The position numbers were made by a program, and so were the translations under genes. A stretch of DNA of 64,000 nt. Source: Camelus ferus. Taxonomy: Eukaryota. Below are positions 3,857 through 61,541 of this stretch, piece after piece. Location of the stretch: contig NC_045711.1 in assembly GCF_009834535.1 (NCBI RefSeq), forward strand, positions 48,050,001-48,114,000. The letters run 5' to 3'. The first letter of the stretch is position 1; every line of letters begins with the position of its first letter. The notes beneath the pieces were generated by a model. That model made no database searches, was not told the origin of the DNA, and saw nothing but the letters and a program-made list of their open reading frames with translations.

Positions 3857-3951
3857 TTCTGGCATAAAGCATGCTTCCATTGCGAAACCTGCAAGATGAC
3901 ACTCAACATGAAGAACTACAAGGGCTATGAGAAGAAGCCCTACTGCAACGC
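3857..3951 (+). CDS. LASP1: LASP1 coding exon 2 (LIM domain, C-terminal part)
   Basis: cccAG|TTC TGG CAT AAA GCA TGC TTC CAT TGC... = [32 protein letters not shown]; ends GC|GTGAGT; 95 nt, phase 0-2. Confidence 0.98.
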
Positions 3952-11501: not shown

Positions 11502-11588
11502 TTTTTTTTTGTGGTGGAGGTACTGGAGATTGAACCCGGACCTCGCACATGCTAAGCATGCACTCTACCACTGAGCTATACCCTTCCC
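11502..11588 (-). mobile_element. tRNA-Ala-derived SINE (camelid-type) with target-site duplication
   Basis: Reverse complement of GGGTATAGCTCAGTGGTAGAGTGCATGCTTAGCATG...; T-tail; ATTCAACAAA repeated at 11491-11500 and 11593-11602. Confidence 0.9.
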
Positions 11589-12884: not shown

Positions 12885-12969
12885 ACACTACCCCAAGCAG
12901 TCTTTCACCATGGTGGCTGACACCCCGGAAAACCTCCGCCTCAAGCAACAGAGTGAGCTCCAGAGTCAG
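12885..12969 (+). CDS. LASP1: LASP1 coding exon 3 (end of LIM domain, nebulin repeat 1)
   Basis: tgcAG|A CAC TAC CCC AAG = [28 protein letters not shown]; donor CAG|GTGAGG; 85 nt; frame continuous with exon 2. Confidence 0.98.
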
Positions 12970-19774: not shown

Positions 19775-19882
19775 GTGCGCTACAAGGAAGAGTTTGAGAA
19801 GAACAAGGGCAAAGGCTTCAGCGTGGTGGCAGACACACCCGAACTCCAGAGAATCAAGAAGACCCAGGACCAGATCAGTAAT
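19775..19882 (+). CDS. LASP1: LASP1 coding exon 4 (nebulin repeat 2)
   Basis: ccAG|GTG CGC TAC = [36 protein letters not shown]; donor AAT|GTAAGC; 108 nt, phase 0-0. Confidence 0.98.
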
Positions 19883-21977: not shown

Positions 21978-22096
21978 GGGGTGGGCATAGCTCAGTGGTA
22001 GAGCGCGTGCTTAGCATGCGCAAGATCCCAGGTTCAACCCCCAGTACCTCCATTAAAAATACATATAATAAATAAAAATTAAAAAAAAAAAGAAAA
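21978..22096 (+). mobile_element. tRNA-Ala-derived SINE
   Basis: GGGCATAGCTCAGTGGTAGAGCGCGTGCTTAGCATGCG...GGTTCAACCCCCAGTACCTCCATTAAAAA plus A-rich tail. Confidence 0.92.
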
Positions 22097-29200: not shown

Positions 29201-29324
29201 CCCAGCTGTCTCTGCATGGAGACCTCCAGGAGTCTCTCCCATCCCAGAATCTTGAGTGGCAACGGAAGGAGAGCTTTGGTTGGTTTGCTCTGGGTCCTTC
29301 ACTCAGCGCTTTCTGCTCCTACAG

Positions 29325-29472
29325 ATAAAATACCATGAGGAGTTTGAGAAGAGCCGCATGGGTCCCAGCGGGGGTGAGGGCATGGAGCCCGAGCGCCGAG
29401 ATCCCCAGGACAGCAGCTACCGGCGACCCCAGGAGCAGCAGCAGCCTCACCACATCCCGACCAGCACCCCAG
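29325..29472 (+). CDS. LASP1: LASP1 coding exon 5 (linker)
   Basis: acAG|ATA AAA TAC = [49 protein letters not shown]; donor G|GTGAGT; 148 nt. Confidence 0.98.
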
Positions 29473-29689
29473 GTGAGTGTGAGGGTCCCATCCCCACCGA
29501 GGGTGTGAGCACCAGGGTTAGGGCCTAAGCTGGGCTCCCGGTGCGATGGGGCACTCAGCCTCTGCTGCCAAATTCCCAACACCAGCCGGTGTGCACACCG
29601 AGACAGGAGCCTTGGGGAAGTGGGAACTGAACAAGCTTGTGGCGGGGTGGAAATACATGAATTGGGCTTCGTGGAGGAAGGGAGGGGCT

Positions 29690-29747: not shown

Positions 29748-29851
29748 TTTACCAGCAGCCCCAGCAGCAGCAGGCAGCCCAGTCCTACGGCGGCTACAAG
29801 GAGCCTGCAGCCCCGGTCTCCGTACAGCGCAGCGCCCCGGGCGGGGGCGGG
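29748..29851 (+). CDS. LASP1: LASP1 coding exon 6 (linker)
   Basis: ccAG|TT TAC CAG = [35 protein letters not shown]; donor GGG|GTGAGC; 104 nt. Confidence 0.98.
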
Positions 29852-30040: not shown

Positions 30041-30147
30041 TTAAAAAAAAAAAATTTTGTTTTTTAATGGAGGTCCAGGGGAACTGAACCCAGAACCTCG
30101 GGCATCCTAAGCATGTGCTCTACCACTGAGCTATACCCTCCTTCCAA
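30041..30147 (-). mobile_element. tRNA-Ala-derived SINE with 13-bp target-site duplication
   Basis: ...CTAAGCATGTGCTCTACCACTGAGCTATACCCTCC; GTCTCAGCCTCTT at 30028-30040 and 30148-30160. Confidence 0.92.
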
Positions 30148-32408: not shown

Positions 32409-32582
32409 AAGCGGTACCGTGCTGTGTACGACTACAGTGCCGCCGACGAGGATGAGGTCTCCTTCCAGGATGGGGACACCATCGTCAATGTGCAGCAGAT
32501 CGATGACGGCTGGATGTACGGGACCGTGGAGCGCACCGGCGACACGGGGATGCTGCCCGCCAACTACGTGGAGGCCATCTGA
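32409..32582 (+). CDS. LASP1: LASP1 coding exon 7 (SH3 domain) to stop codon
   Basis: tgcAG|AAG CGG TAC = [57 protein letters not shown]. Exons 2-7 total 714 nt; with the expected 69-nt exon 1 (outside the window) this gives 260 aa. Confidence 0.99.
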
Positions 32583-50724: not shown

Positions 50725-50854
50725 NNNNNNNNNNNNNNNNNNNNNNNNNNNNNNNNNNNNNNNNNNNNNNNNNNNNNNNNNNNNNNNNNNNNNNNNNNNN
50801 NNNNNNNNNNNNNNNNNNNNNNNNNNNNNNNNNNNNNNNNNNNNNNNNNNNNNN
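50725..50854. other. Assembly gap (130 N)
   Basis: N run. Confidence 1.
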
Positions 50855-51048: not shown

Positions 51049-51204
51049 NNNNNNNNNNNNNNNNNNNNNNNNNNNNNNNNNNNNNNNNNNNNNNNNNNNN
51101 NNNNNNNNNNNNNNNNNNNNNNNNNNNNNNNNNNNNNNNNNNNNNNNNNNNNNNNNNNNNNNNNNNNNNNNNNNNNNNNNNNNNNNNNNNNNNNNNNNNN
51201 NNNN
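51049..51204. other. Assembly gap (156 N)
   Basis: N run. Confidence 1.
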
Positions 51205-52009: not shown

Positions 52010-53460
52010 CTATTTTTTAAATAACTTTATTAGGATATAATTTACATATCACAATTTACCAATTTAAAGTGTACAGTCAAATCTTTTTTAGTATATTCAG
52101 AGAGCTATGCAGCCATCACTGAATCTATTTTAGAATATTTTCATTACCTCAGAAAGAAACCCTGTTCTTTTAATTGTCACTGTCCTATCCCTCTGTCCTT
52201 TTTCACCCTCAGCACTAAGCACTACTTTTTGTCTCTATAGATTTTCCTATTCTAGACTTTCATATGAAGTCACACAGTTAGGTGGTCTTTGAAACAGACT
52301 TCTTTCACTTAGCATGTTTTCAAGGTTCAACTATATTATGGCATGTATTGATTCCTTTTAATGAACAAATGCTATTCCATTGCATAGATATACCACATTT
52401 TGTTTATCCATTCACCCACTGAGGGATATTTGGGTTGCCTCCACCTTTTGGCTATTACGAGTAACGTTGCTATTAACAATCATGTCCAAGTTTCTGTACG
52501 GACATATATTTTAGTTTNNNNNNNNNNNNNNNNNNNNNNNNNNNNNNNNNNNNNNNNNNNNNNNNNNNNNNNNNNNNNNNNNNNNNNNNNNNNNNNNNNN
52601 NNNNNNNNNNNNNNNNNNNNNNNNNNNNNNNNNNNNNNNNNNNNNNNNNNTCCAATTTTCCCACATTGTCACCAACACTTGTTGTTATCTGACATTTAGG
52701 TTCTAGCCATCCTAGGGGCTATGAAGTGGTATCTTATGTTTTTTTAAAAAATAGTTTTATTGAAATATACATAATTTATGTACCATACAATTTACCCATT
52801 TGAAGTGTGTAATTCAATAGTTTTGATATACTACATAATTTTTAAAGTTGTGGTAAAATATATATAAAATTTGCTATTTTAACGTGCACAATTCAGTGGC
52901 GTCAATTACATTCACAATGTTGTTCAACCATCACCACTGTCTTACTCCAAAACTTTTTATTACCTCAAACAGAAACTCTATAACCTTTAAGCAATAACTC
53001 TCCATTTCCCCTTCACCCAGTTTCTGGTAACCTCTAATCTACTTTCTGTTTTTATGAATTTTCTTGTTCTAGGTACCTCACATACGTGGAAGCATACAAT
53101 ATTTGTCCTTTATGTCTGACTTATTTCACTTATTATAATGTTTTCAGAATTCATCCATGTTGTAGCCTGAATCAAAACTTCACTTCTTTTTATGACTGAA
53201 TAATATTCCATTGTAATATATATGCCACATTCTATCCATTCATCTCTTGATGAACACTTGTGTTGCTTCCAGTTTGGGGCTATTGAAAATAATGTTTCAG
53301 TTAACACTGATGTATAAGTATTTGTCCAAGGTCTTGCTCTCAATTCCTTAGTTATAGTCCCAGGAGTGGAATTGCTAGGTCACGTGATAATTCTATGTTT
53401 AGTTTTTTGACGACTGGCCAACCTGTTTTCCACGGTGGTGGCATCATTATACATTTTATA
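52010..53460 (-). mobile_element. Two adjacent older L1M 3' fragments
   Basis: Two antisense L1 3' starts (about 52015 and 52745: TTTATT..ATATAATTTACATA), plus TATTCCATTG..TATGCCACATT and GGAGTGGAATTGCTAGGTCA motifs. Confidence 0.8.
52518..52650. other. Assembly gap (133 N)
   Basis: N run inside L1. Confidence 1.
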
Positions 53461-54654: not shown

Positions 54655-54800
54655 TTTTTTTTTTTAAACTTTATTTTCCCTTTTTTGGGGTAGGGAGAGG
54701 TAATTAAGTTTATTTATTTTTTTAGTGGAGGTACTGGGGACTGAACCCAGGACCTTCTGCATGCTAGGCAGGAACTCTACCACTGAGCTATATCCTCCCC
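54655..54800 (-). mobile_element. tRNA-Ala-derived SINE, longer form
   Basis: GGAGGTACTGGGGACTGAACCCAGGACC...CTCTACCACTGAGCTATATCCTCCCC preceded by GAGGTAATTAAGTTTATTTA and a T run. Confidence 0.9.
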
Positions 54801-61370: not shown

Positions 61371-61541
61371 CTAGAGACCTGTAGTGTTCCAATATAGTGG
61401 AGTNNNNNNNNNNNNNNNNNNNNNNNNNNNNNNNNNNNNNNNNNNNNNNNNNNNNNNNNNNNNNNNNNNNNNNNNNNNNNNNNNNNNNNNNNNNNNNNNN
61501 NNNNNNNNNNNNNNNNNNNNNNNNNNNNNNNNNNNCCTTCA
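61371..61541 (-). CDS. FBXO47: FBXO47 coding exon 2 (mostly N gap)
   Basis: ttgcTAG|TG AAG G (VK..), 132 N, then ..STILEHYRSL G|GTAATT; 171 nt keeps the frame. Confidence 0.9.
61404..61535. other. Assembly gap (132 N) inside FBXO47 coding exon 2
   Basis: N run. Confidence 1.

Follow-up and report, generated by a model that had tools for sequence, protein, structure and literature searches.

In human LASP1, Ser146 is phosphorylated by both PKA and PKG, a modification that reduces its binding to F-actin, zyxin and LPP while permitting relocation of the protein and its ZO-2-dependent nuclear import (PMC2359764, PMC4381576, PMC9361040). The mouse uses Thr156, with forskolin-induced relocation alike and 'no functional difference' reported (PMC2359764, PMC4381576, PMC9361040). 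Rabbit lasp-1 is phosphorylated by PKA at Ser99 and Ser146 (reviewed in PMC4381576), and mutation of both residues suppresses cAMP-dependent translocation in parietal cells (PMC2359764, PMC4381576, PMC9361040). The human and mouse sites given in the initial annotation of the camel locus described here agree with this literature (PMC2359764, PMC4381576). The Ser146 switch underlies much of the work on human LASP1, including F-actin release, zyxin/LPP dissociation and ZO-2-dependent nuclear import. A full-text literature search for LASP1 phosphorylation in any cetartiodactyl returned nothing relevant.

The window, a 64,000-nt stretch of Camelus ferus DNA, contains exons 2 to 7 of camelid LASP1 on the + strand, as located by motif searches and inspection of splice sites. 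Exon 2 (3857–3951) encodes residues 24–55, the second half of the LIM domain, and matches the camelid RefSeq protein P0027; exon 3 (12885–12969) encodes nebulin repeat 1, with NLRLKQQ inside it, both exons being defined by AG/GT borders and translation. Nebulin repeat 2 is encoded by exon 4 (19775–19882), in which GKGFS lies at 19808–19822 and the Ser99 codon at 19820–19822. Exon 5 (29325–29472), bounded by an AG acceptor and a GT donor, comprises 49 in-frame codons for residues 120–168 of the linker plus the first base of codon 169. The remainder of the linker is provided by exon 6 (29748–29851), including the codon for Tyr170, equivalent to human Tyr171, at 29750–29752, and the SH3 domain by exon 7 (32409–32582), which ends in a TGA stop codon at 32580–32582. 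No match to MNPNC was found anywhere in the window, exon 1 and with it the first half of the LIM domain being located upstream.

Spliced exons 2 to 7 yield 237 residues that are 100% identical to residues 24–260 of P0027, the RefSeq LASP1 common to Camelus dromedarius, C. bactrianus, C. ferus and Vicugna pacos, and the 348 nt surrounding exon 5 (29225–29572) are identical to L009 (CM020783.1, GCA_009834535.1). Because P0027 has exactly 23 residues ahead of FWHK, the residue numbers Ser99, Pro146, Gln155 and Tyr170 hold. The exons translate in the order LIM, two nebulin repeats, linker and C-terminal SH3, and P0027 carries precomputed Pfam matches to PF00412 (LIM), PF00880 (Nebulin) and PF00018/PF14604 (SH3). 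The closest matches are all LASP1 and nebulette-like fish proteins score far lower, which identifies the gene as an orthologue of LASP1 and not of LASP2/nebulette. On the basis of domain order and complete identity to annotated camelid LASP1, the gene is a normal, already annotated camelid LASP1 and belongs fully among the LASP1 orthologues; the initial annotation had named it LASP1 from the letters alone.

The linker exon encodes R143 R144 D145 P146 at 29394–29405 (CGC CGA GAT CCC), the Pro146 codon CCC occupying 29403–29405, where human LASP1 has Ser146. The next basic motif, R152 R153 P154 Q155 (RRPQ), is encoded by CGG CGA CCC CAG at 29421–29432, with Gln155 falling in the column of mouse Thr156 (RRPT), the offset resulting from a one-codon deletion. 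Both motifs had been read correctly, base for base, in the initial annotation, and the placement of proline at residue 146 is confirmed by the 23 residues that precede FWHK. At position 146, two residues past R143 R144, camelids have Pro in place of the Ser or Thr of a human-type switch, and two residues past the second arginine pair, where a mouse-type switch would have Thr or Ser, they have the Gln of RRPQ. Ser99 is retained in its KGKGFS context, as in rabbit, and the Abl/Src tyrosine is retained as Tyr170 in PVYQQ, which is encoded across the exon 5/6 junction; the retention of both residues had been noted previously and is substantiated by the codon positions given above.

Comparison with human LASP1 (LASP1_HUMAN, P0184) indicated the same gene with a seven-exon layout as far as the window shows, identical or nearly identical LIM, nebulin and SH3 parts, and common possession of R143 R144, D145, Ser99 and the Abl/Src tyrosine (Y171 in human, Y170 in camelids). 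The camelid protein differs from the human in having Pro146 in place of Ser, RRPQ in place of RRPL, a Ser run one codon shorter (DSSY versus human DGSSY) and no RRxS/T motif at any position. Mouse LASP1 resembles the camelid protein in lacking Ser146 (RREA) and in conserving the second basic pair; however, the mouse has gained a Thr after RRP whereas camelids keep the ancestral Gln and therefore have no replacement acceptor of the mouse kind. Rabbit lasp-1 shares Ser99 in KGKGFS but, unlike the camelid protein, keeps RRDS. Bovine LASP1 (LASP1_BOVIN, P0183) and the other cetartiodactyl proteins match the camelid in RRDP at 143–146, the CCC codon, RRPQ, the one-codon deletion and a length of 260 residues, with Bos differing at a few linker positions (L139, C141, E148 and A164 in Bos). 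The deletion maps to 29409–29417 (D148 S149 S150), where all cetartiodactyl sequences are one codon short in the Ser run after D148, DSSSY becoming DSSY, ESSY, DTGY or DTSY. A 3-bp deletion adjoining the S146P change is common to these sequences, as seen against L001, L002, L005 and L007; a comparable but independent shortening of the Ser run is present in cats.

A regular-expression scan of all 260 residues of P0027 detected no [RK][RK]x[S/T] or Rxx[S/T] motif, and a hidden canonical PKA motif elsewhere in camelid LASP1 was rejected on this whole-protein scan. Related elements were confined to KxxS, at Ser78 and at Ser99, and the RCS of residue 9. LASP1 from Bos, Ursus and Sciurus is likewise without RRxS/T or RxxS/T, KxxS at S78 and S99 being the only such matches. 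Rfam and tandem-repeat scans around exon 5 returned nothing relevant.

The distribution of residue 146 was surveyed in named LASP1 sequences from 58 placental taxa, one marsupial, one monotreme and many sauropsids and amphibians. The exon 5 peptide, compared with representatives clustered at 50% identity, matched mostly fragments and read-through ORFs and served as the entry point to full-length protein; pig LASP1 found in this way was used as the query of a large protein collection, and the members of ten clusters were then listed. Nearly every tetrapod sequence retrieved from outside placentals carries Ser146, as RRNS, RRSS or RRGS, with a single exception (RRNC in P0134), and this near-invariance outside placentals indicates that Ser146 is ancestral. 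Among the 58 placental rows, residue 146 is Ser in 24, Thr in 4, Pro in 14, Ala in 14 and Val in 2, and the listed LASP1 sequences of 29 of these rows contain no [RK][RK]x[S/T] motif. Ser146 has also been lost in arctoid carnivores (Ala/Thr), shrews (Val/Ala) and lemurs (Ala), and all rodents sampled are without it, having Ala, Pro, Thr or Val. Thr146 is found in mustelids, naked mole-rat and pocket gopher. As judged from these proteins, position 146 is evolutionarily labile in placentals: the serine was lost several times independently, and an acceptor was in some cases regained as Thr. At least four placental groups besides Cetartiodactyla have undergone similar losses, and the camelid state accordingly exemplifies ordinary phosphosite turnover.

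The arctoid sequences (bears, panda, pinnipeds and mustelids; P0209, P0212, P0214, P0216, P0218) additionally have an 8–10-residue linker deletion that takes out DSSSYRRP, including the second arginine pair. Bears, panda and pinnipeds have Ala at residue 146. In mustelids the residue is Thr, so that RRDT constitutes a canonical PKA motif, and RRDS persists in dog and feliforms.

The second basic motif occurs as RRPQ in Afrotheria, Xenarthra, one marsupial, horse, pangolins, bats, feliforms, dog and shrews, so that Gln is the ancestral placental residue. The human residue in the column of mouse Thr156 is Leu (RRPL), and Thr (RRPT) occurs only in murid-type sequences, Thr156 on this distribution being a murid novelty. 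The initial annotation had described the LASP1 linker as lacking both known PKA/PKG sites. This is accurate in that neither linker acceptor is present, but RRPQ is not a second loss, since Gln is the ancestral placental state. The motif reads RRTQ in Muntiacus (muntjac, P0191) and RRSQ in Sousa (humpback dolphin, P0157), each with a new Thr or Ser directly after the arginine pair on a Pro146 background.

Replacement of the PKA/PKG Ser146 (RRDS) by Pro corresponds to a single TCC to CCC transition, as the initial annotation had suggested, TCC being the codon in the outgroups, two Equus assemblies, Pteropus (flying fox) and one elephant. That one T to C change suffices for Pro146 could also be cited in favour of a private polymorphism or of an error in sequencing or assembly; nevertheless, CCC is identical in four independent camelid assemblies (L008–L011), drawn from Camelus and Vicugna at least, and recurs in other cetartiodactyl groups, namely two Bos/Bison assemblies and Physeter (sperm whale). 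Error or polymorphism is refuted by this agreement, and we give this reading practically no credence. The same codons bear on a camelid-specific, possibly adaptive loss, which has nothing in its favour except that Pro146 lies in the window, and against which stand the CCC codon in cattle/bison and sperm whale and RRDP in every ruminant and cetacean sequence sampled. Pro146 being common to Tylopoda, Ruminantia and Cetacea, a change specific to camelids is refuted as well, and we regard it as very unlikely. The initial annotation had attributed Pro146 to the lineage of the sequenced animal and had itself set a wide mammalian distribution against its reading. Pro146 did prove widespread, being shared by all camelids, ruminants and cetaceans sampled, RRDP being found in 12 of 12 rows of Tylopoda, Ruminantia and Cetacea, including Swiss-Prot LASP1_BOVIN, and both Suina rows (Sus/Phacochoerus and Catagonus, pigs and a peccary) having RRDA. 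Tylopoda are usually placed as the earliest cetartiodactyl branch. By parsimony, a single Ser to Pro change along the stem of the cetartiodactyls most likely removed Ser146, and we infer from protein sequences and parsimony only that Pro to Ala came later in Suina (pigs, peccaries). An old, cetartiodactyl-wide loss of Ser146 is, in our assessment, almost certain as the evolutionary part of the explanation; the explanation as a whole, in which ordinary phosphosite turnover in LASP1 is combined with a linker switch that is most likely absent, we consider likely.

Regarding function, the human- or mouse-type linker switch, that is, the phosphorylation which lowers F-actin, zyxin and LPP binding and permits relocation, would most likely be absent from camelids, ruminants, whales and pigs, judging from sequence. 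Any remaining cAMP control would be exerted via Ser99, retained in nebulin repeat 2, the KGKGFS context of which is a non-canonical PKA site. Ser99 is reported by Butt et al. 2003 not to be a major site in human LASP1, and this, if true, would weaken it as a substitute. We lean towards a linker that is no PKA/PKG substrate in these four groups, with leftover cAMP sensitivity passing through Ser99. Kinases also use non-consensus sites, and the switch could instead have been kept if PKA/PKG or a different basophilic kinase phosphorylated a non-consensus linker acceptor, Ser149/Ser150 or Thr165/Ser166/Thr167, and actin binding and localisation were affected in the same way, in parallel to the mouse shift to Thr156. 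The mouse acceptor moved 10 residues with no functional difference reported. Selection for a phospho-acceptor close to the basic pairs is hinted at by Thr146 having been regained in mustelids, naked mole-rat and pocket gopher, and by the Ser or Thr right after the second arginine pair in Sousa and Muntiacus. Camelids, however, have no Ser or Thr directly after that pair, nor at +2 or +3 from either pair, Ser149/Ser150 are 5–7 residues from R143/R144, and the 29 of 58 placental rows without a canonical motif fit dispensability better than universal compensation. We consider retention of the switch through another linker acceptor improbable. Absence of the linker switch remains the reading we prefer.

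Pro146 is a real observation but an ordinary one, cetartiodactyl-wide and, by its distribution, about as old as Cetartiodactyla. Public records contain it as well: the exact protein is in RefSeq and UniProt for camelids, and RRDP is in the reviewed bovine entry. Judging from the placental sequences, many mammals can evidently dispense with the Ser146 switch or replace it. A broader proposition, to which we assign slightly less than an even chance, is that the switch is no general mammalian mechanism. On this view, placentals gave up the tetrapod-ancestral serine on five or more occasions (Cetartiodactyla, arctoid carnivores, shrews, lemurs, rodents), and an acceptor was restored in only some cases, either at residue 146 (Thr146 in mustelids, naked mole-rat and pocket gopher) or as the Thr156 of murids. 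If this is true, cetartiodactyl LASP1 would represent a natural, non-phosphorylatable 'S146 mutant', and cattle, pig and camel cells would be ready-made systems for asking what the Ser146 switch is needed for, with bovine, porcine and camelid LASP1 as natural controls for the role of Ser146. For LASP1 specialists there is a caution in these data: half of the placental rows sampled, the main livestock species among them, have neither the site nor a canonical substitute for it, and results from human or mouse cells are therefore not transferable untested to bovine, porcine or camelid cells.

Several further features of the protein and the window were observed. Exon 1, outside the window, encodes residue 9, which belongs to the LIM domain's first zinc-finger knuckle (CARC-x-K) and is Gly in 80 of 89 LASP1 sequences starting with MNPNCARC. 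It is Ser in camelids (AGC; L008–L011 at 301–369, P0027) and sheep, and also at the elephant locus. Cattle, bison and deer have Cys here (TGC) and manatee has Asp, so that Bos and camelids differ at this position, Cys versus Ser. The camelid Ser9 creates the sole R-x-S motif of the protein.

ARAGORN detected four tRNA-like elements, at 11512–11585 (-), 21981–22052 (+), 30068–30141 (-) and 54725–54798 (-), of which two were confirmed by the Rfam tRNA model; three of the four are intronic in LASP1, one of them being in intron 6 just past the linker exons. These elements probably represent SINEs of tRNA origin or pseudogenes, not genes. Downstream of LASP1, G+C content falls sharply from ∼0.52 to ∼0.30 (window positions ∼39000–64000), and this low-G+C part contains four runs of N at 50725–50854, 51049–51204, 52518–52650 and 61404–61535.
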